From Oikopleura dioica (Eukaryota > Animalia > Chordata), in NCBI GenBank assembly GCA_907165135.1, contig OU015570.1, forward strand, positions 1,302,001-1,366,000: DNA of 64,000 bases, read 5' to 3'. Below the pieces are notes generated by a model. It was not told the origin of the DNA. It did no database searches and saw only the letters and a program-made list of their open reading frames with translations. Of this stretch, positions 26,061 through 57,585 are shown in pieces. Each line of letters starts with the position of its first letter. Position 1 is the stretch's first letter. Both the position numbers and the translations under genes were made by a program.

Positions 26061-26969
26061 TCAAGAAAGGGGGCTGTTTCAGGCACTTTTAAGTAAACTC
26101 CACTTTAATCTCGTGAATAAACCGATCATTTGGTCTTCAAGCTGTAAGTCTTCCACCCGAAGGTTCCTCCAGGTTGTCCTCCGGAATAAAGTTACTTAAA
26201 GTGGCCGAACGTGGAAACTTGTGAACATTTAAAGCTCTTTATTGATCTTTTCTTTATTTTTGTTTTCAAGCAGTCTGGTTTGTCTTCCAGTGAAAGAGTC
26301 CTCCGGGATTTTGTCCGGCAATAAATGGCAAAATGTGGCAATATCTGTTCAATCAAGGCTTCATATTTCATTTGCATTTAATTTTTAAATATTTGTCTTC
26401 CAGCAACCTGTCTTCCAGCAACCCGTCTTCCAGCAGAGGGGTCCTCCAGGAGTTCCTCCGGCATTAAGTGACTCAGAGTCGCCGAACGTAGGAACTTGTA
26501 GAAATTCAAGGCTCTTTATTGATCTATGGTGGTTTTATACTGAATATAATTGGAAGACGGGAATCAATCTCGAATATGTTTATTCACCCTGATAGGTGTG
26601 AGCAAAAAATAATAAAATATATATATTATATTTTATGTTATACCTGTGAAGTCAGGGAAAAGAATGATAAAATTTTAGAGGTACAGTCGTTTTTATAGTG
26701 TAGGACACCACCCATCGGTGGCACGGACTTAGACTTGGTCGTACGAACTCGGCGTTGGCCATATCGCCAACGCGGGAATAGAGAGGGGCGAGCTGTCAAG
26801 GTATGATGGAGTGAAAGCCTTGGCGTTGGGCGCGTCACGGCTCACTGAGCAAAATTACGTTGACCACGCGCGCTAGAATCCCATATTTCGAAGCGAAAAC
26901 AGTAGGAAAACCACTACATATTTTCTCTTTTTATTTTTGAAGCGAAGGGTCCGTTGAGCGTAGAAATTT

Positions 26970-35093: not shown

Positions 35094-35563
35094 TAAAAGA
35101 TGTCATCTTCGAGAGAATATTTTAATCATGACAAAAAAAAAGGGCGAAAAAATGGCCAAAAAATGGTATGTTTGGACCTACAGCTCGAAATTTTCTTCTT
35201 ATTTATAATCGTTTTTTCCTGATTCTAGTGTAAAAATGTCTGCTCTTTCATCCTATCATGCCAGAATTATGAAAAGGGGGTTATCCGACGAAATGCGGAG
35301 CCGAAAACTAGAAAATGCACAATTTTCACGATTTTGACCCCCTGAAAATCGTCTCCCCCAAAAATTTCACCTCCACTTATAAAAACACCCCCGCACAGCT
35401 AGAAAAAATGACGATTTTTCTAATGCAAAGCCTACCTATATATTTAGGGTGGTCGCACAAAAAACATATAATATATTATATATAGGTAGATAGCAAATTA
35501 AAGACAGAAAAAGGCTAAAAAATATCAAAAATTCTCTGTACTTAAGGGGGTAGAAACAGCTAT

Positions 35564-35778
35564 TTCGGGCCGTCTCAGCCCTGTTCCATGATTTTTTAAT
35601 TTAAGGGGCTTGACGGCCCTTCGGGCTGTCTCAGCCCTGTTCCATGATTTTTAATTTAAGGGGCTTGACGGCCCTTCGGGCCGTCTCAGCCCTGTTCCAT
35701 TATTTTCTAATTTAAGGGCTTGACGGCCCTTCGGGCCGTCTCAGCCCTGTTCCATGATTTTTTAATTTAAGGGGCTTG
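35564..35778. repeat. 56-bp hairpin satellite (~4 units)
   Basis: Repeats of GGGCCGTCTCAGCCCTGTTCCATGATTTTTAATTTAAGGGGCTTGACGGCCCTTC. Confidence 0.85.
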
Positions 35779-36444
35779 ATTTAAATGTTGTCGGTTTTCC
35801 AACACTGGGAAGCCCTAATTATGCACGTTCTAGCGAACCAAGTTCAATCCATTCATGTTGTTGGTATCAGGAGAAAGCTTGAATCATGGTGAGGAAAATG
35901 ATTATGTACTTTATTACATAAAAATTTATCTCCGAAAACTTCATTTAAATTCTTCATTGAAATAAAAATCGGTCAGGGAGATTATTTTTGTCGCCGGATG
36001 AAAAGGCTCGAAACCCACGATGGTCTCGTGAGAACTCGCACGCCGCCGGCGCCGTCGATTTTTTCATTTGCAGTTCTCAATTTTTCCCGCATAACTTGAA
36101 TCCGTAAGTTGCCGCCGCAGCATCAGATCGAGGTGTATGCATAGCTGACATTGTTTAATGAAAATTGTAAATTTATGCCGGTGAAATGATGCTGACAGTA
36201 CAGTCAGGGCTCGATATCTCGGATTTGGCAAAAAGTGGACCGGGAAGCCGAAAATGGTCAGAAATAGTCATCAGCGTTTTGTAACACTACTAGTAATGAC
36301 TTTTCGGCCTTACATATGAAAGCTGCACCATTGAAAAGCATATTTAATTATTTACAAATCGTAGTTATCGCGCAAAACTGAATCTGTACTTATAAGGGAT
36401 ACAGGTTAGATCAACAAAACTTCTTAGCACGCGCTCAGCGGGAA

Positions 36445-38189: not shown

Positions 38190-38490
38190 GAGTGAGCGTC
38201 GCGCGCCATTTTCTCTTTTCTAACTTTCGCCAGGAAGCCCGAATTTTTAATTCGAATTTAATAAAATTTGGTATACAAACTAAACTTTTTATTCTCTTTC
38301 CTCTCCGACTTTTAGAATTTTGATATCTTGCCGACGAGCTGAGTTATGATCGAAAAACAGATGCTTGAATTCAAGTGTACATAAGTACTCGAAATATTCG
38401 GATTGACAATTTGAGACCAAGTCCATTGAAAAGCCTGTGGTCTCTTCTACAAAGTCTACTAAATGAGGTTTCCCGGAAACGTCTATTTAC
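38190..38490 (-). repeat. Repeat with conserved coding tail; inverted copy at 52740-53040
   Basis: Both copies end in ...CQSEYF(E/K)YLCTLEFKHLFFDHNSARRQDIK(I/S)LKV(G/E)EE(R/K)E*. Confidence 0.65.
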
Positions 38491-39285: not shown

Positions 39286-39688
39286 ACAAGAAACGTGGGA
39301 CTAATTCGTCTTTAAGTTAGGTTTATTAATATTCTCGGGGCAGAATGAACAGTGGAATTATCTTCGTTGTCGTCTTCTGCTGCAAGTCGAGTCGGGCGGA
39401 AATCTGAATTCTAAATGTTAGTTCCAACGTTACGTTTGCACGTGACGTTCTAAATGTTCTAAGGCCCGATGTCCTAACTTCTAAATGCACGTTCTCTAAT
39501 TAACTCTCTCAGCGTGACTTACCGCGTTGTCCGATTTCGACGACTGAATTGTCGAATCTTGAACGCGGCTTTGCTGCCTAGGTGTCAGACTTGCGCAGGC
39601 CCTGCGGCCCTACCGACCGGTCGCACGCGACCGCGCTGATTATGGAATCATGGAAGATATGTCTTCCTTTACCAGGATGAAATCTCGT
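39286..39688 (-). repeat. 3' LTR (39286-39619 shared with the 5' LTR; probably extends to the PPT at 39688)
   Basis: Identity with 52298-52631; PPT directly adjacent at 39689. Confidence 0.8.
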
Positions 39689-39705
39689 CCCCCCTCTTTA
39701 TCTCT
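39689..39705 (-). promoter_or_regulatory. Polypurine tract AGAGATAAAGAGGGGGG
   Basis: Purine-rich tract (one T) upstream of the 3' LTR on the element's sense strand. Confidence 0.6.
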
Positions 39706-39812
39706 GCTAAGTTGCTTAATTAAATGGTACTTGATTTCTATCCATTCTAATTTTAAGCTGATTCCATAAGTAGTTTATTAGTTTATCCGTTACGTGAATC
39801 GTTCTTTACCTT

Positions 39813-42445
39813 CTATTTTTTGAACTTTTTGTAGTTGCCTCCTGCTTGGCCATTCTTTCGTTTGTTGCTGAAGAACTTCTTGTGGTTGGTCACCATTGTT
39901 CCCTGGGCCCAGGCCGGCAACTTTGGAAGTTCTTTCGCTGGAGATTCCGACAAGTCGTAAACGACGAGCCTATTCGTCGGTGAAACCACAACCACGTGGG
40001 AATTTCGTACTTCCGGCAAACCGAGCAAGCTTTTCAGGCGCCCTGCCAAGCAATCGGACTCGACCATCTTCACCAAATCCTCTAGCGACTTGGTTTTGAG
40101 TCTGTCAAGCTTCGCTTTTTGCTCCTTGACCTAAATAAACCTTATTTTCAGTTTCTAATCTTTAACTTTTGATGTTATTTTTTTCACTATTTTAAATTAT
40201 TTCTTGTGTTAAGTTTCGGTCTCTAGAATATGTGTTTACCCTTAAATTTCTCATCTTCCAGTTTTGCTTTCAAATTCTTGATTTCTTTTCAAATTTTTGC
40301 GCACAGCGCTAATTAGCTCCCTGATTGGCTGAGCCGTCACTACGCGTCGCACACTCATAGCGTTATTCACTGCTTTCTGAGCATTTTGATCACAGAGAAA
40401 TCAAATTTTGCTCATTCATTCTTTCTTTTTCTTTACAATTTTGATGGAGAGAAAATTACACTCTAAAGTTTTCTAGAACGTCTCGTGTTTTCGTCCTTGA
40501 TTTCAATATTTCTTCAGTTCTGTTTTCTTGCATTCAGAGGCATCAGGTAATTATTATTTTTTCTATATCCTAATTTTACCTCTATTTAATTCCCTCTAAA
40601 ATTTTTGCTGATTTTACTTACTAATTGTCGGATAGACTTGATTGGGGCCACAAGCTCCCTAAGGATAGGCCCTACTCGAGCGTCCATTAGCAAATCTTCA
40701 TCAATTCGTGGGACTTTGAATCCACGGCCGCCCAGTTCTTTGAAGACTGTTTCGATCTCACTCTTGAAGTGTTCGACCATGTCTTCGATTGAGTAGTTCT
40801 TGTAGCGTTTCTCCATGAACTCGCTGCAGTCCCGAAAGGCACGATGAGTGAAAGTCAGGGAAATCCGAATTGGGTTCGCCGATTGGACTACACAATTTCT
40901 AGTCCAGCTGACTTCCACTCGCCATCGCTCACAGCAAGCCCCTTGGGGAACGTCCAGCATGATGCTTATGAATTCATTGCTGGCCATTGCAAGAGCTAGC
41001 TCTCGGACGAAGCACAAACTGCCAGGGCGATACTAAATTTTATTTTTAGAGATGAATTTGGCCCCTCACGAGCTTCCTGACGATGATGGTCCGCCATTTC
41101 CTGCGAACTACAAGATTCGGCAACAGCTCGACTACTACCAGCGTCTTGTTGACAGGTAATTGTCTTTGTTCTTCTAGAGACATTTTTACTTACGGGGTCT
41201 TGTTCGCTTGCAATTGAAGTTGAAATCAGTTCCAGTGATTTCGCTACTTCCTGGACTGATCGTACGAACTTTGCAGCGGCTACATCCCGGCGCATTTGAG
41301 TCCTGATCGTATCCAACTGCGAGAAAATCGCTAGAAAACGCGTTGGGTTGCAACCGTTGCTAAGTTCTGACTGGAACTCAGCTTGCTCTTCCCTCTCGCG
41401 AACTGCGCTGACGGCAGCCCGGTAGTTGGCGTTTGCTACTTCTGCAGCGTCGACCATTTGGCCTGTTTCTTCATTAGCGCCTTCGTCTTCCTCGTCTGAG
41501 GACAGGAGCTGAACTTTTCTTGGGACGATTTCGCGATTTTCGTGCCCATCGGCCGGTGCTTGTTGTGGCTGAGCTCTGAACGGATTCGCGTTCTGAGCTT
41601 GGCCAAGCATGGATACTCCGTTGATTACGGCTTGTATAACCGGAGCCACTTGATTAGAGGGATTCGGATGGCTTGGGGGAACTGCTCCAACCATGGGATG
41701 GTCCTGGTCGTTACTGGTTGCCGAGATGGCGTGAATCGCCGTTCCAAGCGAACTCGTTTCCTGCTCTGGAAGTTGGTTCGAAGCGCTGGACTCGAGGCCG
41801 ACTTCGAAGATAGTCCGGAATATCCAATGGGTCAGCGGCAAGGTCGACGGGCTCGCGATCTTGGACGTAAGTTTTAACTCACTTTTTAATTAGAATTATT
41901 TAATTTTGAGAGGTTTTATAATTATGGACTAGTTAGTAATGAGTAATGTAATTTTTCTCACCTGCTTTGCCGCTCTTTTTCAGGCGTTCCAAAGCAGTCA
42001 ATTCTCGTCTTTCAGCTTTTTCAATTTGATCCCAAATGCTGCCGATCCATTTTGCGAGTCGCTTGATATCGTCTGGCTCCGGAGTTTCGATTCGAACCCA
42101 GAGAGTCCGCGCACTGATCGACGCGATTGGGAATTCACCGGGTGTTTTCGTGTTCATTAGAGGCCCAGTAAGAGAACAGATTTCCTGGCAAACAGTCAGG
42201 TCGTCACGCGTTCGGATGTATTCGTTTTCCTGGCCATTTTCGCGATCGGGCCAGTAGAATTCAGCGGCGTTGAAGAACAGCATTTCAGCCGAATCGGAAA
42301 AGCCTTCTAGCGGGAACACGGCTGGTTTTGAAAAGATAGGGCTCTTCAAATTTTCCACCTTAGCAGCTCTGATCAGGTCGAATTCCCCCGAAACTTCGAG
42401 CATTGTCCAAAAGCATTCCTCGCTTTCGAGCGTGCTCCAGATCAT
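39813..42445 (-). CDS. Cargo gene W: predicted 4-exon sense-strand gene, ~594 aa, unknown family
   Basis: Exons 42445-41962, 41765-41194, 41032-40622 and 40130-39813 total 1785 nt with no stop. Donors GTGAGA, GTAAGT, GTAAGT; acceptors TTCCAG, TTTAG, TTTAG; phases 1, 0, 0 consistent. AATAAA ~35 nt past the stop. The start may lie further upstream. Confidence 0.6.
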
Positions 42446-42520
42446 AAGGTCGACTTCCAACTTATCATCGTTAAGGGCCTCATTACCGGCCGATTTAGCA
42501 TCACTAAAATTATTTTTCAG

Positions 42521-43554
42521 TCTTCTTCCGACCCAAGGATAACCTTGGTGATCTTGCTTTCGCGACCCTGGTTGCCAGAGCGCTCAGCCTCGCCACCTCC
42601 CGATTCAAAACGATGATGGGATGCCCTTTGGAGCTCGCCTTCTTCAACGGCCTTCAAGTGAAGTATCTTCTCTTGAAGTGCCACCCGCTTTCGCTCTTTA
42701 CAACCGGCATTCAGTCGATTCAACAATTTTACGTAAGTTAATTCAATTGCATTTCTAATTTCATTTCTTATTAAAAGTTCTATCCTAATTTGTCTTTTAA
42801 GGTCGACTTCCGCGTTCTTCGTGAATACGAACGTGATCACCAGGAGCGTGTTGACGATGAATGGAGGATTGGCCTCAATGTCAATCCCAACGCCCTAGAG
42901 ATGCGAGTGCGAAACCCTGGTCGCCGAAACCCTTACACTCCCCCACGTAAGTTTCTTCAGATGTTGTCTAAACTAACTTCTAATTTTAGGTCGCATCCCA
43001 GTTATGCTCCCGGGCTTGGGCGAGCTCTTCCTTGGCTCCTTCGTCATGGAGGAGACCAACTACTCCCTGCGAAATACGCATGGTGCTCCTACCGGTGGTG
43101 CTCCGCGGCTCCTGACGCATGTCGGCGTGGTAAGTTCCTCCAAATGTTGAGTCCTAGCATTGACCTATTTCCGGCCTCGTAGACGGTTTCGTTGCCATTG
43201 CGGCCGCTTTCTGCAAAACTCGAGTTTCCATCTGGACTCTTAATTTATATTTTATTCTCCCAGTTGATAATTTTATTTAGGGACGCCTCAATCGCCAGTA
43301 CAACGAGTTCATGGGTCACGTGGCCCGTGAACACCGAGCCGCAATCGACTACCCATTCGAGGACCCTCGCGACCAGTCCATGTTCGATTATGCTATGGAG
43401 AACTTGGACAACGAGCCCGCTGTTCCCTCCGCGATCGAATTGGAAGACCCGGCTATCTTCTAAGATGGAGATTTCCGAAGAATATAGAGTCGATTTCTTC
43501 GCAAAACATTCCCGCTTAACTCTCTTTGTACTCGAAATAAAAACTGAAATCTAA
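42521..43554 (+). CDS. Cargo gene Z: multi-exon antisense gene, unknown family
   Basis: GT-AG introns 42733-42801 (69 nt), 42947-42989 (43 nt, CTAAC branch), 43130-43182 (53 nt) and 43224-43280 (57 nt) keep an open frame. The last exon is open in two frames (stop 43463 or 43554). The 5' end is unresolved. Confidence 0.55.
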
Positions 43555-43588
43555 CTGACTTGAAATAGAAATAAATTTGAAATAGTTA

Positions 43589-44407
43589 TCAACCCGACTG
43601 ATTTAATGAAGCCGTGAGAAAACTCGGCTTTAGAATTACCTCAGGAGTTTCTTCATCTAGAGCTAGCATTTCTGCATCTTGCATTTCTAGTTCCAAGGTT
43701 TGGCAGAAAGCGTGGAGATCGCAGCATTGGTGGAAAAGATTGGAGATATCTTCTCCGCGTTCGTGGGCGTTTCGCAGAAAATTCTTCATTTCCGCCTTGT
43801 TAATCATGGCGAAATTGTAGCCTGGCCAGATGGAATTCGCCAAGTGTTGGATGTTGAGAGCTGGCTCGGCTTGAGGGCCGAAAATCGCGATTTTCTGACC
43901 GAACATTAAATCGAGCGGGCCCGATTTCGGAGCCAAAAGGTTATAGCACACCTTTCCCACTCGCGAAAGCGTGCCCACCCGTTCGAGCGAAAAGTTCCAT
44001 TCGACTTCGAGGGTCAACTCTTGGCAAATGAATTCGTAGCTCGAATCCGATTCTGCCAAGACCAAAAGATCGACTTCCGGGCGGAGTTCATGGTGAACAA
44101 GCAGTTCGTTTATTCTTCGGAAGATTGAGGCCTTTGTTTCGACTTGGTTCCGGCTAATTTTCATGCGCTTAGCTGGTTGGATTGCAGCCCATCTATCCGC
44201 GACGCGTCTCCAGTTTTCTAAGCTCATGGCGACGCCGGCGACGTACTTGTCGCTGATCAGGCTGCTTAGCAGGCTATCGTCATAATTCTTGCAGATCAAA
44301 CGCTTCGTAAGCTCTTTCCTAACGCTCAGCGGAACCGGGTTTCGGAAAACTTGGTTCTCAGAAAAGCGCGAGATCATGCTTCCGACAATTCGATCCATGG
44401 CCATCAA
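43589..44407 (-). CDS. Cargo gene Y: single-exon 272-aa protein, unknown family
   Basis: Uninterrupted ATG-initiated ORF with globular composition; no signal peptide or TM segment evident. Confidence 0.7.
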   Translation of the reverse strand: MMAMDRIVGSMISRFSENQVFRNPVPLSVRKELTKRLICKNYDDSLLSSLISDKYVAGVAMSLENWRRVADRWAAIQPAKRMKISRNQVETKASIFRRINELLVHHELRPEVDLLVLAESDSSYEFICQELTLEVEWNFSLERVGTLSRVGKVCYNLLAPKSGPLDLMFGQKIAIFGPQAEPALNIQHLANSIWPGYNFAMINKAEMKNFLRNAHERGEDISNLFHQCCDLHAFCQTLELEMQDAEMLALDEETPEVILKPSFLTASLNQSG

Positions 44408-44818
44408 TGATTTCTAAACTGTTTTGGTGTAATTTATGTTAACTAATTAGTTATAATGGGCCAAATAGTCCGGAATTTCGAACTTTAAGCGTCAATAGAC
44501 ACGGCAGTTACAATTTAACAGGCTAGCTTTTACTCTCTTCTCTGCAGTTCTCTCATAAATCCTTTTTAATTGGCTTACTTCTCTACCGGTATCTCTACCC
44601 GCGTGGTGCTAACTCGTTTCATTGGCTCCCGGATTTCCGTCGAACCGACTAGCTCGATTTGGTTTTGATTTTGTTTTCAAAATTTTTACACGCGAAATCG
44701 GCGCCCTACGGGCACGTTTTAGTCTCGAGCGCGTCCTTCTCGTTCGTTATAAATTTCGCTACTGAATTTCCCTGCTGATTCTTTCTTTCTACTCATTTTC
44801 ATCCCTTATTTTGTAGAG
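44408..44818. promoter_or_regulatory. Putative internal divergent promoter
   Basis: 410-bp gap between head-to-head ATGs of Y and X; ATTGG (CCAAT-box) motifs at ~44570 and ~44620. Confidence 0.35.
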
Positions 44819-46218
44819 ATGGTCGATCATATTTCTGAGCTTGTACGAGAATTAGGGCGGACCTTGATGCCGCCAGAATCTGCGGGAGATCCTTCTGATA
44901 TTGAGCTGAGCGATCATCTAGAGCATCGTTCTGAGCACATTTTACCCGAGAACTTTGCTCCTATTATAGGTTGAAATTCTAGCATTATGATCATTGTTTT
45001 AATTTTAATTTACTCTTATTTATTAGTCGCATTTCTAAATTGAAGTTCTAGAGGTAATTCGTGGACATGAGGCTGCTAATCCTCCGACACCCTTGCTTGC
45101 AGCGAGACACTCTTCATTTTCCTCAGTGGCAGTAACCAATTCGACTTTAAATTCGAGTCAGTTGATGGCCCCGCAATTCGGGTTGGCTAATCAGATCGTA
45201 ACCATGCAAAACCGTTACTTGTGCGCGCTTGCCGCAGCTAACAACAGTTTTCCCGCCGTTCAACGGGTAAATGTATTAGTAGAGAAACACCACTTTACTT
45301 CGTTTAAGACCTCCTCCATGTCTCCCATTCCTGCCGCAAATGAACCACAGACTCATGTAATGAGCGACACTTTAATTGATGAACCCGTGACTGACGATGG
45401 AACTCCAGCCGCGATACCTGAGCGGAATGAAGCGCCGACCCCGCCGCGGCCTGCGCCAACTCATCCGTTCAAGCCTTCGCCGGTCAAGTATGAAGTTTCC
45501 GACGAGACATTGACCAGGGTCAATGTTCTGACTGGTTCCGTCGTCGGCGGCAACTTGTTTGGGGTTTATCAGCTATTGCATCTTCGCGCAAATGGCTTCT
45601 ATTTGCCAGAGTACCCGCTTGATTTGATCTATTTTGTTGACGACGGGAGCAAGGTAACTCTTCAACCACGAAATAGCTTACGGCTTCTATTCTAGCTCGT
45701 TGTTCCAGAGGGGGAGATAATTGGCCGTCAGTCTCTACAGCGGGGTTTCCCCGAGCAATTTGCGCCATACAAAACCTCTGGCTCGAATCTGGAACTGGCT
45801 CATCCCGAACTTCCTTTCTACCATCGACACTTGACCTTTCTTCAACATTTCGGTCGCTTCCTTAATTCTTCCAGCTTGTGTCCTTCTTTCTTTATCCGGC
45901 TTGGTGCTTCGCCCGTGGTGAGCTTAGCTATTCTTATTTCCATTACCAAGGTTCTAGGTGCAAATTGTGGACACTGAGCCTCAGTATCAACGTCTTGTGC
46001 AAATATCCTCGAAGATCTTCGTCAGATTCCTATCGAACTACCTTACTCGTTTGTTGACTTCGCTCTACCGTTATGTCCGTGGCGCTTACCTTCATCGTAC
46101 GCCTGGAGTCCTTTGCGATCACGTAGAACTCGACAAGATGCTTGACTCTCTCATCGACTCTGTTGTAGTTAAATTTCCTTTGCTTGTTCAGCAAGGGTCA
46201 CTCTGTTTTATCGGATGA
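44819..46218 (+). CDS. Cargo gene X: 4-exon antisense gene, ~411 aa, unknown family
   Basis: Exons 44819-44969, 45052 (or 45046)-45653, 45696-45917 and 45958-46218; GT-AG introns of ~82, 42 and 40 nt; phases 1, 0, 0 give one ORF from MVDHISEL to LCFIG*. Confidence 0.8.
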
Positions 46219-46437
46219 TATGTCCTAACAAATCATGTGAAACTAACTTCTAATAAATTATAATCACCGTCTCTATTTCTACAGGAGTTTAGTTGTTAAT
46301 AATTTGTTGATTGGTTAGCATATTCCCTAATTCTAAACTTACGACTAACCAGTCTTGTATTTTGAGTAATAACCGGCTAGTTTACTAAACTTTCTAAATA
46401 AAAATCGGACATTAAAGTCGATTAAATCTTCGCGACA

Positions 46438-49400
46438 TTAAGCTTTTGGGATCCGTGTGAAGCCTATATTGAAACAATCTGGAGTGGGGTTTTCCAATTC
46501 CTCGATTTCCGCGATTCCTGGGTTTCCTCTTCCGTCTACGACCATTTTAATGGCAAAAAATGACCAGATCTTGAAAGAGCTCTTGTGGTTTCGTTTCAGA
46601 TCCATTTTGACTGTGCTTACTAGTTTATTTTCAAAATCTATTCCCGTTGGGATCTGATCGCATTCGACTACTTTCCAAAATGGTCGCGAGTTATTCTTGT
46701 TGAATGTTTCCGAAAGAATTATGATGTCTCCTAATTTTATTGGGGAACTTGTGAGTCCTCCATAGCTTCCGTCCGAATCTTCGAATGGGACCAGCTCCAT
46801 TGCCTCACGAATGAAACCCTTCCTGGCTAATTTGTCGTTCGCTTTTCTCGACATTTCTCTACCCTTTTTAATTCTAGTCCTAATTTTGTCCCAATCTATA
46901 TCGAGCTTCTTTCCGGTAGTTTGACATTTTCCAGAGAAAAGTTCCATTGGGGAGTAACCGTGGCCTGCTTTTAGCTTATTGTGATTATAGTTAACGTTCT
47001 CCGCCAGGTCCCAAGCGTCCTTCAATTCGTTTAGAGCTAATACTTAAAACTTTGTTAACTTCCCTAATCGCGTATCTAAAATTGCTAAGTTATTTTTGCT
47101 CCTGGAGCTCTTCGTTGTTATCAGAACTTTAATATTGAAACCCAGTAGTTCCGGGTCTTCTACTAGTGATGAATTTATTCTTGCACCATCCGCGATGACT
47201 GTAGTCATCTCTGCCCTATCGCCCTTCAACGAAGATACAGCTCTTATCAGCGCGAGACGATTATTTTTCGCGTTGGAGGCTCCTTCTACCGGAATAAGCC
47301 TCGTGAATGCCGTCAAATGATCTGTGATTACCCAGAATCTGACGGGTCTATTGCCGTCAAGCTCATTTGTCCTGGTCATTTGGTCCCAGGAGCATATGTG
47401 ACCGATGAATTCCGGATTTAGATCGTTGTACTCTTTCAAATTGCTCACGGTGTTCGGTACATTTCTAAGGAAGGAGCATTTTCTGCAGCGGGAGATGATT
47501 GCTTTTAGCGCGTCCCTGATTTTTGGGGCGTGTACAATGCATTTAGCTTCATTCATGAGTGCTGTGTGTGAAGCACATCCTTTATCGTCATGGATTTTCT
47601 GCGCTATCCAATTCGTGAGTCTTTCCGGAATAACGGGTACGAAAATCTGACGCACGCCGAAGTTTCTCACCGTCACTACTTTACCGTTCAACACTTCCAT
47701 TTTCCATCTTGCTGTCTCGCCTCGTCTGTTTTTAGCTCCTGGTAATATCTCGTCTTCTTTGGCCTGAAAAACAGCTCTGAGCGTTCTATCCCTTCTTTGA
47801 ATGCTCGCAATTAAACCATCATTGGCTAAGAACTCTGACAGTGTTATCGATTTCAATTCTGGGTGATCTCTAATGACCGCTGGGTTGGTTCTCCCGACCT
47901 TGAAGCTCAAAGCCTCAGCCCTAAAGGGGGTAAAATTTATTGATTTGAAAGCCCGTCTCTGCTCGATCCACCAAAGTTCGTTACATCTAATATCTTGAAT
48001 CGCTTCGTATTCTTCGAGTTTCTTCGTCGGGATCATAATTTCCGCTAGCTGAAGATCCTTCTGCTTCTCCTCATTGTCTTCCATCATTTGTTGGAATTGA
48101 AGATTTTCTGATTTTATGACGATCGCGTCGGCGGCTTCGCAAACCTTGCACCGTCCTTCACATGTTGTAGCGATTGACGGTTTCCTGGATATAAAATCTG
48201 CAAGGACGATGTAATCACTCTTGTCCGACATGTAAATCACGTCTACGTCGTGGTTTACTAATTCTAGCAAATGGCAGTTGATTCTGAGGTCGTCGCTTAG
48301 GCTTTCGCCTTTTACTAATCGCTTAAATAATTTTTCCACGGACAAGCTGTCTGTATAAATTCTGGTGGTCACTCTTGCTATTTGCATTTCGACCTTGAAA
48401 AATTTGACTGCCGCAACTAGCCCTGTTAATTCGAGTAAACAACTCGACATCGCGATTTTGTTAGTGAGATCGGTCCTTTTTCTCGAAAACAATCTGATCA
48501 TTCTCCTGTTTCCTTGCTCGTCGAGTTGCATTAAAAATCCTCCTGTGGCGCAGTACGAGCTGTCGACCACTAAAATCGTTTCCATTCCTTCGACGACTGG
48601 GAACAAATCCACCAGATTCTTCGAAATAACTGCCTTTAAGTTTTGAAACTCAATTATGAGGTCCTCCGTCCAATTAATATTCTCAGCTGAATTCTTGCCT
48701 CCCACAGCTTCTGCTAGATTTCTAGTGACTTCTACTCTACTCGGGATGCTGTCTGATACGAACGCTACTCTTCCTAAAATTGCCCTCAACTGTCTAACCG
48801 TTTTAACGGATTCGTGGCTTTCATCTAAAATCTTTTGGAGGTTGTGCTCGTCTACCAGAATTTTCCCGTTGCAAATTTTCTTGCCAAGGATTTTCATGCT
48901 TTTGCCTAACAACTTCATCTTTTTCCCGTTGAATCTTAGGTTATTTTTATGGGTAATTATCAAAATCTTTTCTAAGTTTTCTAAGAATTCTTCTCTTGAG
49001 TTCGCTGAGAAGGTTAAATCGTCGACGTATCTGCACATAAAATCGTTGCAAGGGTAGTAAATCCTTGCCAGGAAGTCTCTGCTAATGCTGGGAGAGCACA
49101 CCCAACCCATTGGTAATCTAACGTAAGCCGTGTTCCCAATATGGGGATGTCTCACGCAGAAATTGGGAATGATCTCATCAGACATTCTAAATGAATGGAA
49201 CATCGACGATAAATCCGCCATTCCGATAAGTCCAGTCTCCGTGTATTTCGCCATCCTCTGAATCGCATCTCTGATCGAGTCCATCTCGTGGTTAGCAAAG
49301 GTTGTGTTCTGGTTTATGCCGGCCGAACAGTCCGATACTAACCTGATATTTGCCATTTTTTCCTCTACGGTCATCCCTGGCGAATGTTTTTTACTAACTG

Positions 49401-50320
49401 GGAAGATTCTCATAAAATTTTTCGGTTGAATCTTCGGGTCTAACGGTTTTAAAATTCCTTCTGCGAGCTCATTGTTGAGTTTATTTATAACTTGTTCTTG
49501 GACTTCAGGTGACCATCTCTCGAAGGATTTGTCAGCGAACTTGCCTGTCGGGTTTCCTTTTATCTCACCGTGGACGATGAATTGATCATCTGGTACTACT
49601 CCTGAGTCTTGGAGAAAACGACAAAATACTTTAAGAGCAGTTTTTTTATTTTCCTGAAGAATTTCTTGTCTTCGGGGTTATCCAAATCCAGAACCTCCCC
49701 GAATTCATCAATGATCACTTCGTCCACTGTGTTGATTTTCTTATTTTCCTCGTGAATCTGCTCGATTTTCCTCCAAAATTCGCGCATGCCGTCTGGGTTT
49801 ATTTTGTCAGTGGGTTTCATGTCGAAGAATATTGAGGCTAATTCGTCATTTGGGTCGATTTCCGACCTGATGCTCACCTCTGCGACTAAAGACTCCGTGA
49901 CAATCTTATTAAATTCTCTGCTCAATGCCGACCACTCTTGGTCCTCAACTTCCACATGATTCACAAACGTCCAATAATCCTCTAAAGGTTGATCGTTGAT
50001 CACAATCTTGGTCTCTCCATCCACGGCCTTGAATTCGATACCGTTCGGTTGCCAATCTCTCACTCCCAGCAGGATCCAGTTGTCGTCTTTTCCCTCATGG
50101 ACGGCTGCGTCCACTGATTTAATGTTTAAAGCTCCCAGACATAACGAGAACGAAACTGCAAAAGGCAACAATTTAAGTTTACCTCCGCCTGCCGTTGAAC
50201 CTTTCCGCATGCATGATCCCCTGCGAACCGCGCATTTATTTTCTTCTAACTGTTTCAGAAACCTGCAATTAATCAGGGTCGTATTCGCTCCTGTATCAAA
50301 ACCAAAGTGTAAGTATTCCT
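46438..50320 (-). pseudogene. pol: Gypsy pol (PR, RT, RNase H, integrase) with frameshifts and one nonsense codon
   Basis: PR FGFDTGANTT; RT YVRLPMGW and YVDDL; RH VVDSS, LLEL, YTDS, LADFISR; IN H..H..CRKC, SWDQ, IADG. Frame changes near 50315, 49600 and 49435; in-frame TAA at 47044-47046. Confidence 0.9.
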
Positions 50321-51892
50321 AGTTTCAATTTTATTAGCCGAATTGTTTTCTACAACAGATATGTAGTCAAATTTAAGGGAAACATTTCTTTTATCGTATT
50401 TCTTGAAGACCGCGTGTTCTTCTTTCGCCGAGCGGATGTCTCTTAAGAGTCTAAAAATGCGGTTATTCTCCTTAATAAATTCGTCGGACAAACCTTCTTC
50501 AGACGATGAGGTTGCTTCTCCAGAAGTGGTTGTGATCTCCTCTTCGTCGCTGTCGGTCTTCTCGTTGTCGTCGTCTTCTTGGGCTAAATGCCACCCTCCT
50601 TCTTCGTTTCTGATTGCTCGTTGGATGTAGTCGAGCTCGCGCTCAACCTCTTCCAAAGCCACCGCCTTAAACTTTTTGCCCGGAAGTTGTTTCGGGCCCC
50701 ACGATCTTGACTTCAGGTCCTTTTTGGCCATCGTGACCTTCGCCTTGACTTGTCGGCTGAATCTGCCTCTCGACATCCAGCGGATCTTGTCTTGGTCCAC
50801 CCTGCCGAGCTCCTGCTGGGACATTTTGAGCTCTTTCACCTCCGCAAACACCTTGCCAGTGTTCGCGTCAACAATCAAATCGCTTCGAGAGTTGACGGCG
50901 TTGGCTTGGTATTTCGGGGGCTTCTTCTTGTCCCTGCGTTCCGGAGCCCATTTGTTGAACTTGGGCTTTTCTTTCTTATCAGCCTCTTTTACGGCTTTGG
51001 CTTCCTGGTCGACCACATCCTGGTACGCTCGCATTGGGTTCTCGGGGTCGCACACGTAGCTCAATTCCCATTTCTCGTGGCAAATGTTGAGCAGGTCATC
51101 TCTGGCGTTCCTTTCGAACTTCCCCAGGATGAATTGTTGGTTTTCGAGGACCGTTTTCAAATCAATTGATTCGTAGTCCTTGTCAACCCTGGTTGCCAGT
51201 GACTCCAGAATGGCCACGAGGTCCTTCTCTGAGTTGGAAAGAATTCCGCTCAGAAAAGCTGTCAGCTCCATCAACGGCGTCCAGCCTTCAGCTTCCATGA
51301 AGTCCGCCCTTTCGAAGCTATGGCCGATGGAGACTGCTTCGCGGGAATAATCGCCCAAGTTGTTCATCATGACCTGGCGAGCCAAATCGATCTTGCTTTT
51401 GACCGTAAAAGCCGCGTATTCTTTGTTCGCCATGGTTCGAAGCAGAGCGAACCATCTGAAGAATTCCGGCTTCTTACTTGGGCCTTCCAGGTCTTCGATG
51501 AGCTTATCAACATAAGCTCTGACTGATGCCAGTTGCCCTCGTCTCACCGCGTTCTTGTGATCTGGGCGGCATTGGGTGATAAAAGTCTCCCCGGCCCTGC
51601 GTACAGCTTCCCTCGCGAACTTGAGGTTCGCTTCTTCGTTCCAGTTCTCGAAATTGGACAGACCTGGGAAGAAGAAATTAATGAAGACTTCATTAATTTG
51701 GTCTTGTCCTTCTGGTCTTCCTTCCAAGTCGATGGGCCCTTCGTAAACGAGAACTCCGTCCTGAAGGTCGTCATCAACTCCGATGAACTCAATCATGCCT
51801 TTTCCTCTGTACCTTTTTGGGAAGGTGGTTTTCCAATTTCGAAACTCGTTCAAGGTGCTCGGGATACCGCACGAGCCCGTCCAATTCGGCAT
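50273..51892 (-). CDS. gag: Gag-like ORF, 539 aa
   Basis: Intact ORF between the PBS/leader and the protease; no CCHC knuckle seen. Assignment is positional. Confidence 0.75.
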   Translation of the reverse strand: MPNWTGSCGIPSTLNEFRNWKTTFPKRYRGKGMIEFIGVDDDLQDGVLVYEGPIDLEGRPEGQDQINEVFINFFFPGLSNFENWNEEANLKFAREAVRRAGETFITQCRPDHKNAVRRGQLASVRAYVDKLIEDLEGPSKKPEFFRWFALLRTMANKEYAAFTVKSKIDLARQVMMNNLGDYSREAVSIGHSFERADFMEAEGWTPLMELTAFLSGILSNSEKDLVAILESLATRVDKDYESIDLKTVLENQQFILGKFERNARDDLLNICHEKWELSYVCDPENPMRAYQDVVDQEAKAVKEADKKEKPKFNKWAPERRDKKKPPKYQANAVNSRSDLIVDANTGKVFAEVKELKMSQQELGRVDQDKIRWMSRGRFSRQVKAKVTMAKKDLKSRSWGPKQLPGKKFKAVALEEVERELDYIQRAIRNEEGGWHLAQEDDDNEKTDSDEEEITTTSGEATSSSEEGLSDEFIKENNRIFRLLRDIRSAKEEHAVFKKYDKRNVSLKFDYISVVENNSANKIETRNTYTLVLIQERIRP

Positions 51893-52287
51893 GTCTCTGC
51901 CTGAGGGTGTATCCCAGAGGCATGGTAGATCGGTGCTAAATTGAGCGTATGGGTTTTTGGGCTTCTGGCTAGAATCCGCTTCGAAACGTAGCTGTCAAAG
52001 TGAGCCAGCCATGCTTCGTAGATGATTTTCGCCATTGCCGGGGAATGTCCGTGCACAACTTCGGCGGTTTCTGCGAATCACTGAGGTTGCGGTACGGTTC
52101 ATAGCTTCGGGCGTTAGCCTTAGCGTAAATCATAGTAGATGGGTTGTTCGACATTGTGCTTTAAATGGGCACGTCGCTAAATGTTTAACTCAAAGAGGAC
52201 TCAATAATGTCACTCTCTTGAGTGCTAAATGTGGAGAATACGCGATTTCCGGTAGTACTTCGGAAACGTAAGCCCGCTTAAAAGCGC

Positions 52288-52298
52288 TTCAGTCACCA
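52288..52298 (-). promoter_or_regulatory. Primer-binding site TGGTGACTGAA
   Basis: Directly abuts the 5' LTR; identical 11-mer in the other Gypsy family. Confidence 0.75.
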
Positions 52299-52631
52299 CA
52301 AGAAACGTGGGACTAATTCGTCTTTAAGTTAGGTTTATTAATATTCTCGGGGCAGAATGAACAGTGGAATTATCTTCGTTGTCGTCTTCTGCTGCAAGTC
52401 GAGTCGGGCGGAAATCTGAATTCTAAATGTTAGTTCCAACGTTACGTTTGCACGTGACGTTCTAAATGTTCTAAGGCCCGATGTCCTAACTTCTAAATGC
52501 ACGTTCTCTAATTAACTCTCTCAGCGTGACTTACCGCGTTGTCCGATTTCGACGACTGAATTGTCGAATCTTGAACGCGGCTTTGCTGCCTAGGTGTCAG
52601 ACTTGCGCAGGCCCTGCGGCCCTACCGACCG
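52298..52631 (-). repeat. 5' LTR (apparently missing its first ~69 nt)
   Basis: Identical to 39286-39619. Confidence 0.85.
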
Positions 52632-52739: not shown

Positions 52740-53040
52740 CCGGGCTATGCTTTACTTTCATCGGTAGTAGACTTTGTAGAAGTGACCACGGGCTTTTTAG
52801 TGGACTTGGTCTTAAAGTGTCAATCCGAATATTTCAAGTACTTATGTACACTTGAATTCAAGCATCTGTTTTTCGATCATAACTCAGCTCGTCGCCAAGA
52901 TATCAAAAGTCTAAAAGTCGAAGAGGAAAAAGAATAAAAGTTAAGTTTGTATGCCAAATTTTATTAAATTCGAATAAAACATTTGGGCTTCCTGGCAAAA
53001 GTGAGAAGAGAGAAAATGACGCGCGGCGCTCACTCGGTGT
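52740..53040 (+). repeat. Inverted partner of 38190-38490
   Basis: Direct comparison; stop codon at 52937. Confidence 0.65.
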
Positions 53041-55904
53041 TAGGGTTAGTGACTAGTCATCGGCCATGATGATGCCCTCGACAAGCGCCGCCAATGAGCG
53101 CGCGTCATTTTCCCACCTACTCTGCGCGAAACTGACGGTTTCAGTTTCCGCTTTGCTCAGACTCGCCTTGGCCTTGCAAGTGGCAAGACCAAGTTATTTG
53201 ATTAGATTTTTCACCTGTAGAGAAACAAGGATGAATAAATTTACTGTGGGACTATTCGGTGTATTCTTTGTCCAGCCGGGGGTTCTGGCATGATGGAAAG
53301 GCAGGTTATTACAGTTGTATCTCCCCGACCAGCAGAGAGGAACTTCTAGGCAAAAAGACTAGTCGGTAACCCTTTCATCGGCATAGTCCCTTAAGCCAAT
53401 CAGAGCGCGCCCCCTCAATTTTCACATAATGATAAATAGGAGCACACTGGAGCGCACTCACTTGGACTTTTCTCTCACTTGGACTCGCGCTCATTCTAAC
53501 TCTTCGCTCGTTTGAGCTCGTCGGCCAATTAGAGTATTGGTTGAATAGAGCGAGGAGTTAGAATGAGTGCAAAAATTCCATAAAAATTTCTCAAAAAATT
53601 AAAAAAAGAATTTTAAAAATGAATCCGGTGACTGTCACCGGCTGACAAAATCGAGGAATTTTTTCAAGTCACTTTAATTTACTTTTTGATAGCAGTATCG
53701 AATAATTTTGTACAATTTTAATGGGTGATAATTTAGAGGTTAATGCACTCCTGCAGGTGTCTGTTGTCTACAAGACTTTAAGTCTTGAGTCTAATAGTGT
53801 CTCGAAGACAGAACAAAATTTCGGTTGCCCACTTGTAAACTTTTATAATAATTTAGTAATAAAATATAGGCTATAAGTAGGGGGTGCACAGTGGGAAAAT
53901 CGGCAAATATACAAGTTAACTTATCTATATTAAAACCCCTCAAAAGATCCGCTTTCATCTAAGGATCATTTTATTTCATTACGAGAAACCCAAAAGCAGA
54001 TGATCACCCCTAAAATCACGTGACAAGGGTTGATTTAACATACTTTTGCCTATAGATAGGGGGTGAACGGTGAAAAATTGATTTTTTTGTCATCCTCTAA
54101 TAGAGATGAATAATACATCGATGGAAAGCCCTTGATCTACTGATCATTTTGACATATGAATTGAGGTCATCAAAGGTCACGTGGGGTCAGCTGAGGACAA
54201 AATCTGATTTTTCCCAAACTCGGCGTAACTAGGGTTTATATGCATGATTTTGATTGCTGACAGTCACTGATCATATGAATTTTTCCTAAATTGTTATCAC
54301 GTGACATCTAGGAGGACCCCGGAGGACCTAGATGATGGAAGAATTTAAGCAAATTGAATGAAGAATAATCTCTTCCAGGGAATTCTTCGACATGGTGATT
54401 AACCGAAACGTAAACATTGAAAAATCTGATAATTTGATCACGTGGACCCTCGGAGGACCTCCTTTAATGGAAGAATTAACTTAAGAAAGAAGAGAAATCT
54501 AAAGATAAAATAATTTATTTTGCAAAAACCATAATTTTAAATCGGGAAGGACAAACAGAAGTTTATTGAAAAACGGGTGTGGGTGGGGTTTGGGAAGAAA
54601 TGAGACTGATCATCTCTATCTTTTATTCAAATCCCAGCCGTAATCAAGCCCATTTCAATTTAAAAGCCAGGACGGGGCTGAGACGGCCCGAAGGGCCGTC
54701 AAGCCCATTTCAATTAGGCTATAGAAAAAAGTGCCAAAAGGTTACCTCGTAATTTTCCAGCATATAAAAGAGCAGATCAAGCGCTTTCAAGTGATAGTCA
54801 TATGATTTTGTGGTCTCGTGAGGAAAAATTCTAAAGCCGATTTTCCGTCAAAATCCTTCATTTTTGGCCAAGAGGGGTGTTCGAATCCCGACGATGACAT
54901 TATTTTTTCAAACCGGTTTTTAAAATAAAATGATCAACACTGATCATGTGATCTAGCATGAGTCATTTTTGTCCTCCGGAGGACTTTTCTGGTAGAAGAG
55001 TGTTCCTGGAAGACAAAAATTTTCGACAAATTGTCAGCCCCAGGGATGTGCCTTTTGCTTTTTTCGAGTGCGGTGCGGTGCGAAGTGCGATTTTTTGCGG
55101 GTTTTTCTGCGGTGCGAAGTGCGATTTTTCAAATTTTTCTTCGCAGTGCGACGCAGAGTGCGAAGTGCGATGTGTGGACAAAAATTGCGGAAAATTGTGC
55201 GATAGTGCGGAAAGTGCGGAAGTGCGAAAGTGCGAAGTGCGGAAAATATGAAAAGTGCGAAAAAATTGCGATTTTTTGAGAGAGAAGGAAAATGAATAAA
55301 AATCGCCGAAAATTTCTCCCACGCCCAGAATAGAAATAATTTTCAAAACTTTCAATCATAACCATAATTGAGCTTCAAACAATGATAATTTGAATTTTTT
55401 AAATGACGGGTGTGGGCAGGGATGTACATTTTCTAAAATTTTCAACTGCGGTGCGGTGCGAACTGCGATTTTTTTTTGACGATTTTCTGCGGTGCGAACT
55501 GCGAGATTTAAAATTTTCTCTTCGCAGTGCGGCGCAGACTGCGATTTTCTGCGATCTTCGGAAAAAATTGAAAAATGCGATAAATTCTGCGATTTTCTGC
55601 GAAACTGCGGAAAATAAGCGGAAACTGCGCTTAATTCTGCGATTTTTGTGAAAAATGCGAAATTTTCTGCGAAATGCGATCCGAGTGAAAAGAGTGGTCA
55701 TTATTCTGACGGGCAGAGTTGTATTTTTGAAAATTTTTTCTGAGCTGAGCAAGCTGATCTGAGGTCGAAATTGAGCTGAGCTGGCCCTTATAAAAACAAC
55801 TGAGCTGAGCTGAGCTCAGCTGGATTAAAAAATGAGCTGAGCTGGGGCATATTTGAAAATTTTTGAGCTGAGCTGAGCCGACCATTCTTTTATGCTGAGA
55901 AAGC

Positions 55905-56546
55905 CTTCGGGCCGTCTCAGCCCCGTTCCATGATTTTTAAGTTTAAGAGGCTTGACGGCCCTTCGGGCCGTCTCAGCCCCGTTCCATGATTTTTAAGTTT
56001 AAGGGGCTTGACGGCCCTTCGGGCCGTCTCAGCCCCGTTCCATGATTTTTAAGTTTAAGGGGCTTGACGGCCCTTTATTTTTAATTTTAAGGGGCTTGAC
56101 GGCCCTTCGGGCCGTTTCAGCCCCGTTCCTTCATTTTTAATTTTAAGGGGCTTGACGGCCCTTCGGGCCGTTTCAGCCCCGTTCCTTCATTTTTAATTCT
56201 AAGGGCTTGACGGCCCTTCGGGCCGTTTCAGCCCCGTTCCTTCATTTTTAATTTTAAGGGCTTGACGGCCCTTCGGGCCGTTTCAGCCCCGTTCCTTCAT
56301 TTTTAATTTTAAGGGGCTTGACGGCCCTTCGGGCCGTTTCAGCCCCGTTCCTTCATTTTTAATTTTAAGGGCTTGACGGCCCTTCGGGCCGTTTCAGCCC
56401 CGTTCCTTCATTTTTAATTTTAAGGGGCTTGACGGCCCTTCGGGCCGTCTCAGCCCCGTTCCATGATTTTTAAGTTTAAGGGGCTTGACGGCCCTTCGGG
56501 CCGTCTCAGCCCCGTTCCATGATTTTTAAGTTTAAGGGGCTTGACA
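55905..56546. repeat. 56-bp hairpin satellite (~11 units, two subtypes)
   Basis: Unit contains GGGGCTTGACGGCCCTTCGGGCCGT(C/T)TCAGCCCC plus an AT-rich linker. Confidence 0.92.
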
Positions 56547-57585
56547 AAGGCTTTGAACTATGAGTTGATCAATCTCAGTTTTGTCCCCAACCCCTCCCTC
56601 ACCCATTATTTAAAAAATTAAAATTATCACTGTTTTTAGCTTAATTATGGTTTTGATTAAAAGTTTGATCAAGTTGGGCGAACGGCGACTTGGACAAACG
56701 GAGACCATTCTTACGACGCCCTATTTTTCGTGTATTTCCAGTAACACACAAGAGGAAAACTTGAAAAAATTGCTGGAAAATGACCGCAGAATCCGCACCA
56801 CCCACACCCAGGGATGTACATTCGCAGTGGGGAAATCGCAGAAACCTTCGCAGTGCGACCTGCGAACTGCGAAATTTCGCACTTCGCAGCGCAGTCAGAG
56901 CACACGTATGCACATCGCACCGCAGTCCGCAGTTTTCGCAGAATTTTCGAAAACTGCGATTTTTCCACCGTCATTTTCCGCAGTTTTTGATTAATCTCGC
57001 AGTTCGCAGACTGCGGATTCTGCGGTCATTTTCCAGCAATTTTTTCAAGTTTTCCTCTTGTGTGTTACTGGAAATACACGAAAAATAGGGCGTCGTAAGA
57101 ATGGTCTCCGTTTGTCCAAGTCGCCGTTCGCCCAACTTGATCAAACTTTTAATCAAAACCATAATTAAGCTAAAAACAGTGATAATTTTAATTTTTTAAA
57201 TAATGGGTGAGGGAGGGGTTGGGGACAAAACTGAGATTGATCAACTCATAGTTCAAAGCCTTTGTGAAGCCCCTTAAACTTAAAAATCATGGAACGGGCC
57301 TGAGACGGCCCGAAGGGCCGTCAAGCCCCTTAAACTTAAAAATCATGGAACGGGGCTGAGACGGCCCGAAGGGCCGTCAAGCCCCTTAAACTTAAAAATC
57401 ATGGAACGGGGCTGAGACGGCCCGAAGGGCCGTCAAGCCCTTAAACTTAAAAATCATGGAACGGGCTGAGACGGCCCGAAGGGCCGTCAAGCCCCTTAAA
57501 CTTAAAAATCATGGAACGGGGCTGAGACGGCCCGAAGGGCCGTCAAGCCCCTTAAAATTAAAAATGAAGGAACGGGGCTGAAATT
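56393..57585. repeat. Near-perfect palindrome with a 214-bp spacer
   Basis: 56546-56797 is the reverse complement of 57012-57265 (one mismatch seen); arms continue into the satellite arrays. Confidence 0.9.
57270..57583. repeat. 56-bp hairpin satellite, inverted array (~5.5 units)
   Basis: Repeats of GAGACGGCCCGAAGGGCCGTCAAGCCCCTTAAACTTAAAAATCATGGAACGGGGCT. Confidence 0.9.

Follow-up and report, generated by a model that had tools for sequence, protein, structure and literature searches.

The 64-kb stretch of Oikopleura dioica DNA analysed here (the window) holds, as judged from its sequence, a nearly intact and recently inserted Ty3/Gypsy-type LTR retrotransposon on the minus strand. Behind pol this element probably carries a conserved module that is not an env, made up of an antisense spliced gene (X) and a sense spliced gene that starts at a coding exon called Y. 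An LTR retrotransposon is commonly taken to consist of gag-pol, to which an env may be added. The element fits the known type 'LTR retrotransposon with additional ORFs', in a new form. Conserved extra genes have been documented mainly in plants and rotifers; here an animal element has conserved spliced genes on both strands, and the natural mRNA of a relative already indicates how the sense gene is expressed.

Structure of the element

The element covers 13,346 bp of the minus strand (39286-52631) in the order gag, protease, RT-RNase H-integrase. Its 5' LTR in element orientation (52298-52631) and its 3' LTR (39286-39619), both of 334 bp on the minus strand, are direct repeats whose starts are 13,012 bp apart. 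They are 100% identical, as an earlier note on this DNA had stated, and the insertion is therefore young. On the sense strand the LTRs start with CGG and end with TGT; the TG..CA termini are absent. A target-site duplication was sought at both LTR flanks and none was found, the flanking 4-5 bp being different.

A PBS-like stretch starting with TGG (52285-52298, minus strand), read from the sequence, reaches into the 5' LTR by one base, the last of that repeat. A tRNA scan and an Rfam scan of the window were both empty, leaving no tRNA gene with which to compare it. A purine-rich run at 39680-39703 (minus strand), also read from the sequence, is a possible polypurine tract. The earlier note had placed such a tract at the end of the element, and a clear purine run, a single one, does exist there, but about 60-80 nt separate it from the 3' LTR that follows.

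Between position 46441, where pol ends, and the 3' LTR lie 6,821 bp, in keeping with the long stretch of about 6.6 kb claimed between integrase and polypurine tract. The base composition of this cargo is strand-skewed like that of gag-pol, and the flanks differ. A nested insertion or an internal duplication in the cargo was considered and rejected; the cargo is unlike the rest of the window.

gag, protease and pol

A gag-like open frame of 573 codons (50276-51994, minus strand) was assigned from its position and length; it lacks a CCHC knuckle and matches nothing in Pfam or the PDB. The protease frame (49599-50318, minus strand) overlaps both gag and pol, with both frame changes in the -1 direction, and gives weak aspartyl-protease Pfam matches (E 1.5e-4, below the curated cut-off). 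The pol frame (46441-49677, minus strand) covers RT, RNase H and integrase with one in-frame stop and no frameshift. It has RVT_1 and RT_RNaseH_2 Pfam matches and a YVDD motif, followed after RNase H by an HHCC-like motif and a weak Integrase_H2C2 match.

In the PDB the RT matches Ty3 RT (E 1e-10), and Ty3 and caulimovirus RT are its nearest entries. A word-based protein search gave one relative of pol only, P0001, with 30% identity over about 1080 residues. The assignment to Ty3/Gypsy made in the earlier note is upheld by the LTR pair, the gene order and the Ty3-like RT, the protease and integrase matches being weak.

The antisense gene X

Gene X (45039-46218, plus strand) lies tail-to-tail with pol and head-to-head with Y. 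Its exons a, b and c end at 45653, cover 45696-45917 and cover 45958-46215, respectively; the 5' end is uncertain. The two introns are GT..AG introns in phase 0 (45654-45695, 42 nt, and 45918-45957, 40 nt); the GC content of the window is 40% and introns are 40-42 nt long. Both introns are found at the same places in the window element and in L007, which together with L008 forms a pair of related loci. Antisense frames of L007/L008 match exon b with 41% identity over 74 aa (E 1.5e-11) and exon c with 43% identity over 82 aa (E 4.7e-15), and exon a weakly (E 0.012-0.02). By word-based protein search, exon a alone and the 218-codon plus frame of X have no relative. The X exons of the window and of L007 have no Pfam match and hence no TRP28 (Transposase_28) domain.

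Judged by this conservation, X is a real antisense gene with at least three exons. The earlier note had described it as a plus-strand gene of four exons; the spliced gene stands, and three of its exons, with the two introns between them, can be traced in a relative.

The spacer between X and Y (44405-45038), as read from the sequence, has no coding signal on either strand. AG acceptors lie inside it, 10-20 nt upstream of the ATG of Y. These 0.6 kb inside the element are a candidate promoter for both directions.

Y, domain 2 and the sense mRNA

The Y exon (43640-44404, minus strand, 255 codons) starts with an ATG at 44404-44402 and ends at a GTAATT donor in phase 0. Nine marine relatives were found (best E 1.8e-43), from which a family alignment was made, and a GT donor follows the Y domain in six of the seven genomic ones. 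Use of the donor is seen from two relatives, the genomic L010 and the mRNA L005. These are 99.2-99.6% identical, save for an 87-nt GT..AG stretch, an intron of L010 that is missing from the mRNA, and a second stretch started by GT.

The L005 mRNA opens with 26 nt that form the end of the Oikopleura dioica spliced leader, placed 25 nt before the ATG; the spliced leader, as a string or a gene, is absent from the window. The mRNA fuses Y to a second domain, which maps to 41.96-42.44 kb of the window, and in P0013 Y and domain 2 share one open frame. The sense gene of a relative is thus expressed as a spliced mRNA carrying the spliced leader. In the window, domain 2 (41963-42439, minus strand) is the homology-backed part of an open frame of 216 codons (41936-42583). 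By BLASTP it matches residues 329-495 of P0013 (E 1e-11; 172 aa, 27% identical), and it runs directly into CAG/GTGAGA and an AT-rich stretch with TACTAAC. Of the single-exon minus-strand gene proposed for Y, the conserved coding exon remains, but not the single exon, given a donor found throughout the family and a relative's mRNA that is spliced onwards.

The Y model has a pLDDT of 70 and the P0013 model one of about 90. With Foldseek, neither the Y model, compared with PDB and BFVD, nor the P0013 model, compared with PDB, had a match below E 0.04, and a PDB sequence search with the Y profile gave nothing. A nucleotidyltransferase theme for the two folds was faint (TM-scores of about 0.1) and was rejected. 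Y represents a new protein family, the fold of which is confidently predicted and unmatched.

Coding signal in the cargo

The sense accessory coding region (39816-44404, minus strand) contains the Y exon, domain 2 and more frames, in a composition like that of gag-pol. We take it for one or two spliced genes with an uncertain internal exon chain. In 300 strand-matched Markov simulations no frame was as long as any of three minus-strand cargo frames (297, 274 and 216 codons).

A codon test trained on gag-pol at first favoured every minus frame; with stops excluded and a strand-matched null, most of its power was lost. A universal amino-acid score separates gag-pol from its shadows, yet fails on the homology-backed exons of X. 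As an intron finder, a scan for AT-rich islands was non-discriminating, equally many islands being found in gag-pol, and a search for small frames at a low threshold yielded, apart from X, Y and domain 2, nothing but noise. The protein searches were made exon by exon. Pfam gave no match for any cargo frame on either strand. A scan of a metagenome collection gave one short locus and an IMG/VR scan none. None of the sense-strand cargo frames has a TM segment (the highest 19-residue hydropathy is 1.52 against a threshold of 1.6), and the Y domain and P0013 have no fusion-protein match. The earlier view that the cargo is not an env is therefore supported.

The earlier note divided the cargo into four separate genes: X (plus strand), Y (minus strand, one exon), Z (plus strand, at least four introns) and W (minus strand, four exons). 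We consider this division unlikely, although X and Y are real and some of the remaining signal speaks for it. In the W region the 297-codon minus frame is longer than chance allows. In the stretch claimed for Z (42584-43639) a 60-codon plus frame (43281-43460) scores as coding-like and is preceded on the plus strand by a pyrimidine tract and an AG. However, no relative was found for any Z or W frame; the 297-codon one gave none in a word-based protein search, and the plus frames gave none among the collected loci. Outside the 218-codon frame of X, plus frames do not exceed the antisense shadows of gag-pol in length, and apart from the 60-codon one they equal such shadows in score as well. A Z gene with at least four introns is thus not borne out: its frames are shadow-like, lack relatives among the loci collected and have no Pfam match.

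The number and bounds of the genes change as well. Y ends at the family-wide donor, and in a relative it forms one mRNA with the counterpart of the minus frame of 216 codons that lies further 3'. The stretch that separates Y from W consists in part of homology-backed coding sequence on the sense strand. The stretch 42584-43639 could hold introns and exons (one or more of each) that belong to the sense gene, or a gene nested there on the antisense strand, or the two together. The word 'orphan' applies only in that the relatives are nameless; X and Y do have relatives.

It is improbable that the sense cargo is a single decayed third ORF, a former env or another, whose frames are pieces of a pseudogene and not exons. 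A series of seven or eight frames on the minus strand covers 4.6 kb of the cargo with frame changes, two pairs of them overlapping, and pol itself has its in-frame stop, as such decay would leave them. Against this, identical LTRs mark a young insertion, and the junctions examined are canonical GT donors followed by AT-rich stretches. Furthermore, the donor recurs in relatives and is used in an mRNA, and no TM or other env-like feature is present.

Relatives and inheritance of the module

In L007/L008 a pol end, an antisense X and a sense Y follow each other in the order and orientation of the window element. The pol end matches with 37% identity over 43 aa (E 3e-8, pairwise) and Y with 37% identity over 142 aa. 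Pol end, X and Y show similar divergence from the window element, at about 40% protein identity. The L007 copy of Y lacks the N-terminal third and has a stop where other members have the donor.

The module is not universal in the clade, since L001, the closest pol relative with downstream sequence (30% identity), has no member of the Y family in the 4 kb after pol. In four further Y-family contigs (L002, L004, L006 and L009) neither X nor pol was found beside Y at detectable similarity, and some members of the family may be host genes or lie in other contexts.

Such contigs, L001, the lack of a target-site duplication, the unusual LTR termini and the purine run apart from the LTR might suggest host DNA gained once, by transduction, recombination between two elements or an assembly join, and not a heritable part, but we regard this as very improbable, as L007/L008 repeat the arrangement with similar divergence in all three parts. 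In its strand-skewed composition, moreover, the cargo goes with the element and not with the flanks, and nothing elsewhere in the window is similar to it. A one-off capture, named in the earlier note as an outcome that would overturn its reading, is contradicted by this repeated arrangement. Sequence comparison shows that the module has been passed on together with pol in two diverged elements at least.

Proposed expression of the module

In the preferred reading, a conserved module of antisense X and a sense gene starting at Y, Y would be the first exon of the sense gene, spliced to downstream exons that include domain 2 (41.96-42.44 kb), and the gene may reach further, through the frames as far as 39.8 kb. 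The sense introns would be kept in the full-length RNA, the template of the DNA copy, as they are in retroviral genomic RNA. The antisense introns would persist because they cannot be removed from this RNA.

A subgenomic mRNA for the sense gene might be made in two ways. The long LTR transcript could be trans-spliced to the spliced leader at an acceptor just upstream of the ATG, or a two-way internal promoter in the X/Y spacer could be used, which would then drive X too. The products would be soluble proteins with an alpha/beta domain, acidic linkers and a long C-terminal helix. They may act on the RNA of the element or on host control, as cofactors or regulators, and would not be entry proteins.

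A further-reaching proposal, to which we give slightly less than an even chance, is a larvacean lineage of 'complex retrotransposons' with two or more stable accessory genes, all with introns and spread over both strands, the sense one expressed by spliced-leader trans-splicing of the full-length RNA and accompanied by an antisense spliced gene. If true, the host machinery that resolves operons stands in for the retroviral splice donor. Larvaceans have a tiny genome under strong pressure against transposons. Three questions become directly testable with this element, from data on expression and distribution: the role of the accessory proteins, the retention of introns in genomic RNA, and spliced-leader trans-splicing as a mechanism for subgenomic mRNAs.

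Comparison with known systems

The earlier note did not recognise the layout from described families. Analogues are found in the antisense ORFs of plant Tat/Retand elements, the ORF3s of bdelloid rotifers and the Tor env with its internal promoter. An antisense spliced gene in an animal LTR retrotransposon was not found described in the literature searched.

Complex retroviruses, e.g. deltaretroviruses, have extra genes between pol/env and the 3' LTR, expressed from subgenomic spliced mRNAs, as well as one minus-strand gene, and introns are kept in the genomic RNA. The element resembles them in its extra spliced genes before the 3' LTR, one on the opposite strand, and the spliced sense mRNA of a relative fits the analogy drawn in the earlier note. 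Unlike retroviruses, it has an RT nearest to Ty3 and caulimoviruses in the PDB and no env, and it does not belong to the Retroviridae. No likeness to retroviral accessory proteins was found by Foldseek of the Y model against PDB and BFVD or by the PDB sequence search with the Y profile. Elements with an errantivirus-like env differ as well: here there is no TM segment and no fusion-protein match (Y domain against PDB and BFVD, P0013 against PDB).

Plant Tat/Retand elements have conserved ORFs antisense to gag-pol in a long region between pol and the 3' LTR, which in Retand measures 2.9-6.6 kb and has an antisense ORF with a TRP28 domain; a role like that of retroviral accessory factors has been suggested for these ORFs (PMC11963269, PMC7264820). 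The present element is similar in its 6.8-kb region and in a conserved antisense ORF (X, shared with L007/L008). It differs in that the host is not a plant, X has no Pfam match and a multi-exon sense gene lies beside the antisense one.

In the bdelloid rotifer elements Vesta, Juno and TelKA, ORF3 is often not an env and forms a separate transcription unit with spliced messages; the ORF3s are sense-oriented and code for GDSL lipase, DEDDy exonuclease, coiled-coil or TM proteins (PMC5408684). The element shares with them a non-env extra gene, probably with a spliced message, in an animal LTR retrotransposon, whereas its proteins match nothing and one of its genes is antisense.

Tor elements of Oikopleura dioica are Ty3/Gypsy-like, with gag-pol and a third gene behind pol that codes for a transmembrane glycoprotein (env), although some Tor groups are without env (PMC4402516). 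The third gene has its own mRNA, made by splicing or from an internal promoter, and in some groups a spacer separates it from pol (PMC4402516). The extra gene behind pol, the spacer and, as predicted, the separate mRNA are alike in the window element, a likeness drawn from the described layout. Unlike the Tor env, the sense frames here are free of TM segments, are interrupted by internal introns and are accompanied by an antisense spliced gene.

LTRs, gag and pol

The Gypsy-type element (39286-52631, minus strand) is bounded by two 334-bp direct repeats (39286-39619, 52298-52631), in which every base is identical. The LTR termini lack TG..CA, and no target-site duplication was found at the flanks of the element. 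A PBS-like stretch beginning TGG directly adjoins the 5' LTR, and the sole clear purine run lies 60-80 nt off the 3' LTR.

All recognisable retroelement genes between the LTRs are found on the minus strand. These are a gag-like frame of 573 codons with no family match, a protease frame with weak aspartyl-protease matches, and pol, which matches RVT_1, RT_RNaseH_2 and, weakly, Integrase_H2C2 and contains YVDD and HHCC-like motifs. The three frames overlap and follow one another by shifts of -1, resembling programmed frameshift sites. When the RT was searched against PDB, the closest neighbours were a caulimovirus polyprotein and the Ty3 RT (E ~1e-10), with gamma-retroviral and foamy-virus RTs ranking next. 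A single database relative of pol was found, the protein P0001 from a Tara Oceans contig, with 30% identity. Aligned with it, pol contains a single in-frame stop and is free of frameshifts, and no breaks were seen in the gag or protease frames.

Surroundings of the element

The entire element is flanked by a 175-nt inverted repeat (38287-38461 and 52765-52939, 94% complementary), whose arms lie approximately 0.8 kb to the left and 0.13 kb to the right, and it may have been inserted within a foldback or TIR-type repeat. An unrelated second Gypsy-type remnant is located at 30065-32738 on the minus strand, with a 557-codon ORF matching rve, Integrase_H2C2 and RT_RNaseH; there is a weak RVT_1 match upstream of this ORF, and the remnant matches P0001 with 26% identity. 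Tandem arrays with units of 55-57 nt (25505-26146, 35506-35834, 55848-56601, 57241-57581, 61874-62048) and long inverted copies, e.g. 17424-18018 versus 25931-26525 (99% complementary), suggest that nested transposon-like units make up a region dense in repeats. A 163-codon minus-strand ORF at 61276-61767 has a weak match to TP6A_N (type IIB topoisomerase / Spo11; E 7e-4, below the curated cut-off) and could be the exon of a host gene.

The region between pol and the 3' LTR

The cargo, as we call it here, spans the 6,821 bp that separate the end of pol (46441) from the 3' LTR. Its plus-strand composition (A 0.23, T 0.32) matches that of gag-pol (A 0.22, T 0.33) and is unlike both flanks (A and T both ~0.30). 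No similarity to the remainder of the window and no internal repeats were found in the cargo.

Open frames on the minus strand tile the cargo from 44.4 to 39.8 kb. The lengths of the longest three (297, 274 and 216 codons) were reached in none of 300 Markov simulations preserving the composition of the strand. On the plus strand a single frame stands out, having 218 codons, a length attained in 3% of simulations, and the remaining plus frames are comparable to the antisense shadow frames of gag-pol (up to 152 codons). Scoring the codon usage of the cargo frames gave little extra once stop codons had been left out.

The sense gene

The 274-codon minus frame contains the exon Y (43640-44404), which the earlier note took for a one-exon gene. 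A search of 1.84 billion representative proteins turned up nine relatives, the best at E 1.8e-43 and 40% identity. None of them has a name, and all come from short contigs, either marine metagenomic or from Logan. One relative, the 544-aa product of contig L005 (P0013), matches the window twice: residues 1-244 correspond to Y, and residues 329-495 (BLASTP E 1e-11) to a minus frame of 216 codons that lies 1.2 kb to the 3' side and holds the second domain of the sense gene (41963-42439).

Outside intron-like stretches, L005 and the metagenome contig L010 share 99.2-99.6% identity. An 87-nt GT...AG stretch in L010 is precisely missing from L005, and a second L010 stretch, opening with GTAAAC, begins where L005 runs on into the next exon. 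Nucleotides 1-26 of L005 equal the 3'-terminal 26 nt of the Oikopleura dioica spliced leader (40 nt) as printed (PMC6883708), and an ATG follows 25 nt further on. The intron-like differences from L010 and the spliced-leader end prove that L005 is an mRNA. L005 and L010 are two copies or alleles differing in leader sequence or acceptor use: the two are wholly divergent over 17 nt 5' of position -8 relative to the ATG (L005 27-43, L010 128-144), and the sequence downstream is more than 99% identical.

The second L010 intron opens directly after the Y domain. Within three codons of this site, and in the same phase 0, the window has GAG|GTAATT, and donors of the GTAAGT-, GTGAGT- or GTAGTT-type are present after the domain in the relatives L002, L004, L006 and L009; L007 alone has a stop in place of the donor. 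Y is part of a real gene, as a first exon and not as a gene standing alone. Read-through into an intron common to the family therefore explains the short tails and stops at which Y ends in the window and most of its relatives. Directly 3' of the 216-codon frame there is CAG|GTGAGA followed by an AT-rich stretch with TACTAAC, and the 297-codon frame begins just after. The sense gene may continue into this frame, of which the relatives give no instance.

In three relatives (L009 605-1473; P0007, P0008, P0009) the Y domain is broken at approximately residue 83-95, the position of the 87-nt intron of L010, whereas the frame stays open there in the window, P0002 and P0003. This intron is therefore present in some lineages of the family and lacking in others.

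The antisense gene

Gene X (45039-46218, plus strand) has its relative in contig L007 and in L008, a 99.9% identical contig of another sample. The plus strand of L007 encodes the final 43 residues of a pol, 37% identical to the C-terminal end in the window (pairwise E 3e-8). Minus-strand frames of L007 then match two plus frames located at 45.7-46.2 kb in the window (41% over 74 aa, E 1.5e-11; 43% over 82 aa, E 4.7e-15) and, weakly, the end of the 218-codon plus frame. After these pieces, a member of the Y family follows on the L007 plus strand (37% identity over 142 aa), so that pol end, X and Y have identical order and orientation in both.

Short GT..AG stretches, all in phase 0, separate the X pieces at equal alignment positions as counted by hand (window, 42 and 40 nt; L007, 51 and 44 nt). 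The first carries an in-frame stop in both, and the opposite strand of these intervals has stops in all frames. The stretches are introns common to the relatives, and X is a real, spliced antisense gene of at least three exons. A fourth, as counted in the earlier note, is possible.

The remaining cargo frames

The plus-strand gene Z proposed at 42.6-43.6 kb could not be confirmed: no plus frame in this region has a relative or family match. A 60-codon plus frame at 43281-43460 has a pyrimidine tract and AG on its 5' side and looks protein-like, differing from the overlapping minus frame by approximately one standard deviation; an adjoining 125-codon minus frame also scores as coding. A 135-codon plus frame (42930-43150) contains the motif KFLQMLS twice, approximately 60 codons apart, which hints at a small internal duplication. 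For the proposed minus-strand gene W, the distal frames are longer than chance allows and no relatives of them were found. The protein searches took one exon at a time.

Function and predicted structure

In agreement with the earlier note, the sense cargo is not an env, because no TM-like segment was found in any sense frame. The Y domain is predicted to adopt an alpha/beta fold, with a mean pLDDT of 70 from the window sequence and ~90 across the domain in P0013, and the model of the second domain is largely unpredicted save for one 65-residue helix. Structure searches with the Y domain in PDB and BFVD and with P0013 in PDB gave no match, nor did searches of Pfam and of PDB by sequence. The reading favoured here concerns expression: the sense gene would be expressed as a subgenomic mRNA, either through spliced-leader trans-splicing of the long LTR transcript close to its ATG or from a two-way promoter between X and Y that would also serve X. 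As to a biochemical role, we would tentatively infer a cofactor or regulator.

Comparison with known elements

Further ORFs located 3' of pol, on either strand, have been described in plant Gypsy lineages, in bdelloid rotifers and in Tor of Oikopleura (PMC11963269, PMC7264820, PMC5408684, PMC4402516). In the plant Gypsy element Retand, the region from pol to the 3' LTR is 2.9-6.6 kb and carries antisense TRP28 ORFs (PMC11963269, PMC7264820); bdelloid rotifer elements have varied sense ORF3s (PMC5408684), and in Tor elements the extra gene is an env that has a promoter or splice of its own (PMC4402516). Our literature search found no description of an animal LTR element pairing an antisense spliced gene with a multi-exon, spliced-leader-capped sense gene. 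The layout is therefore read as a variation on the known elements with additional ORFs.
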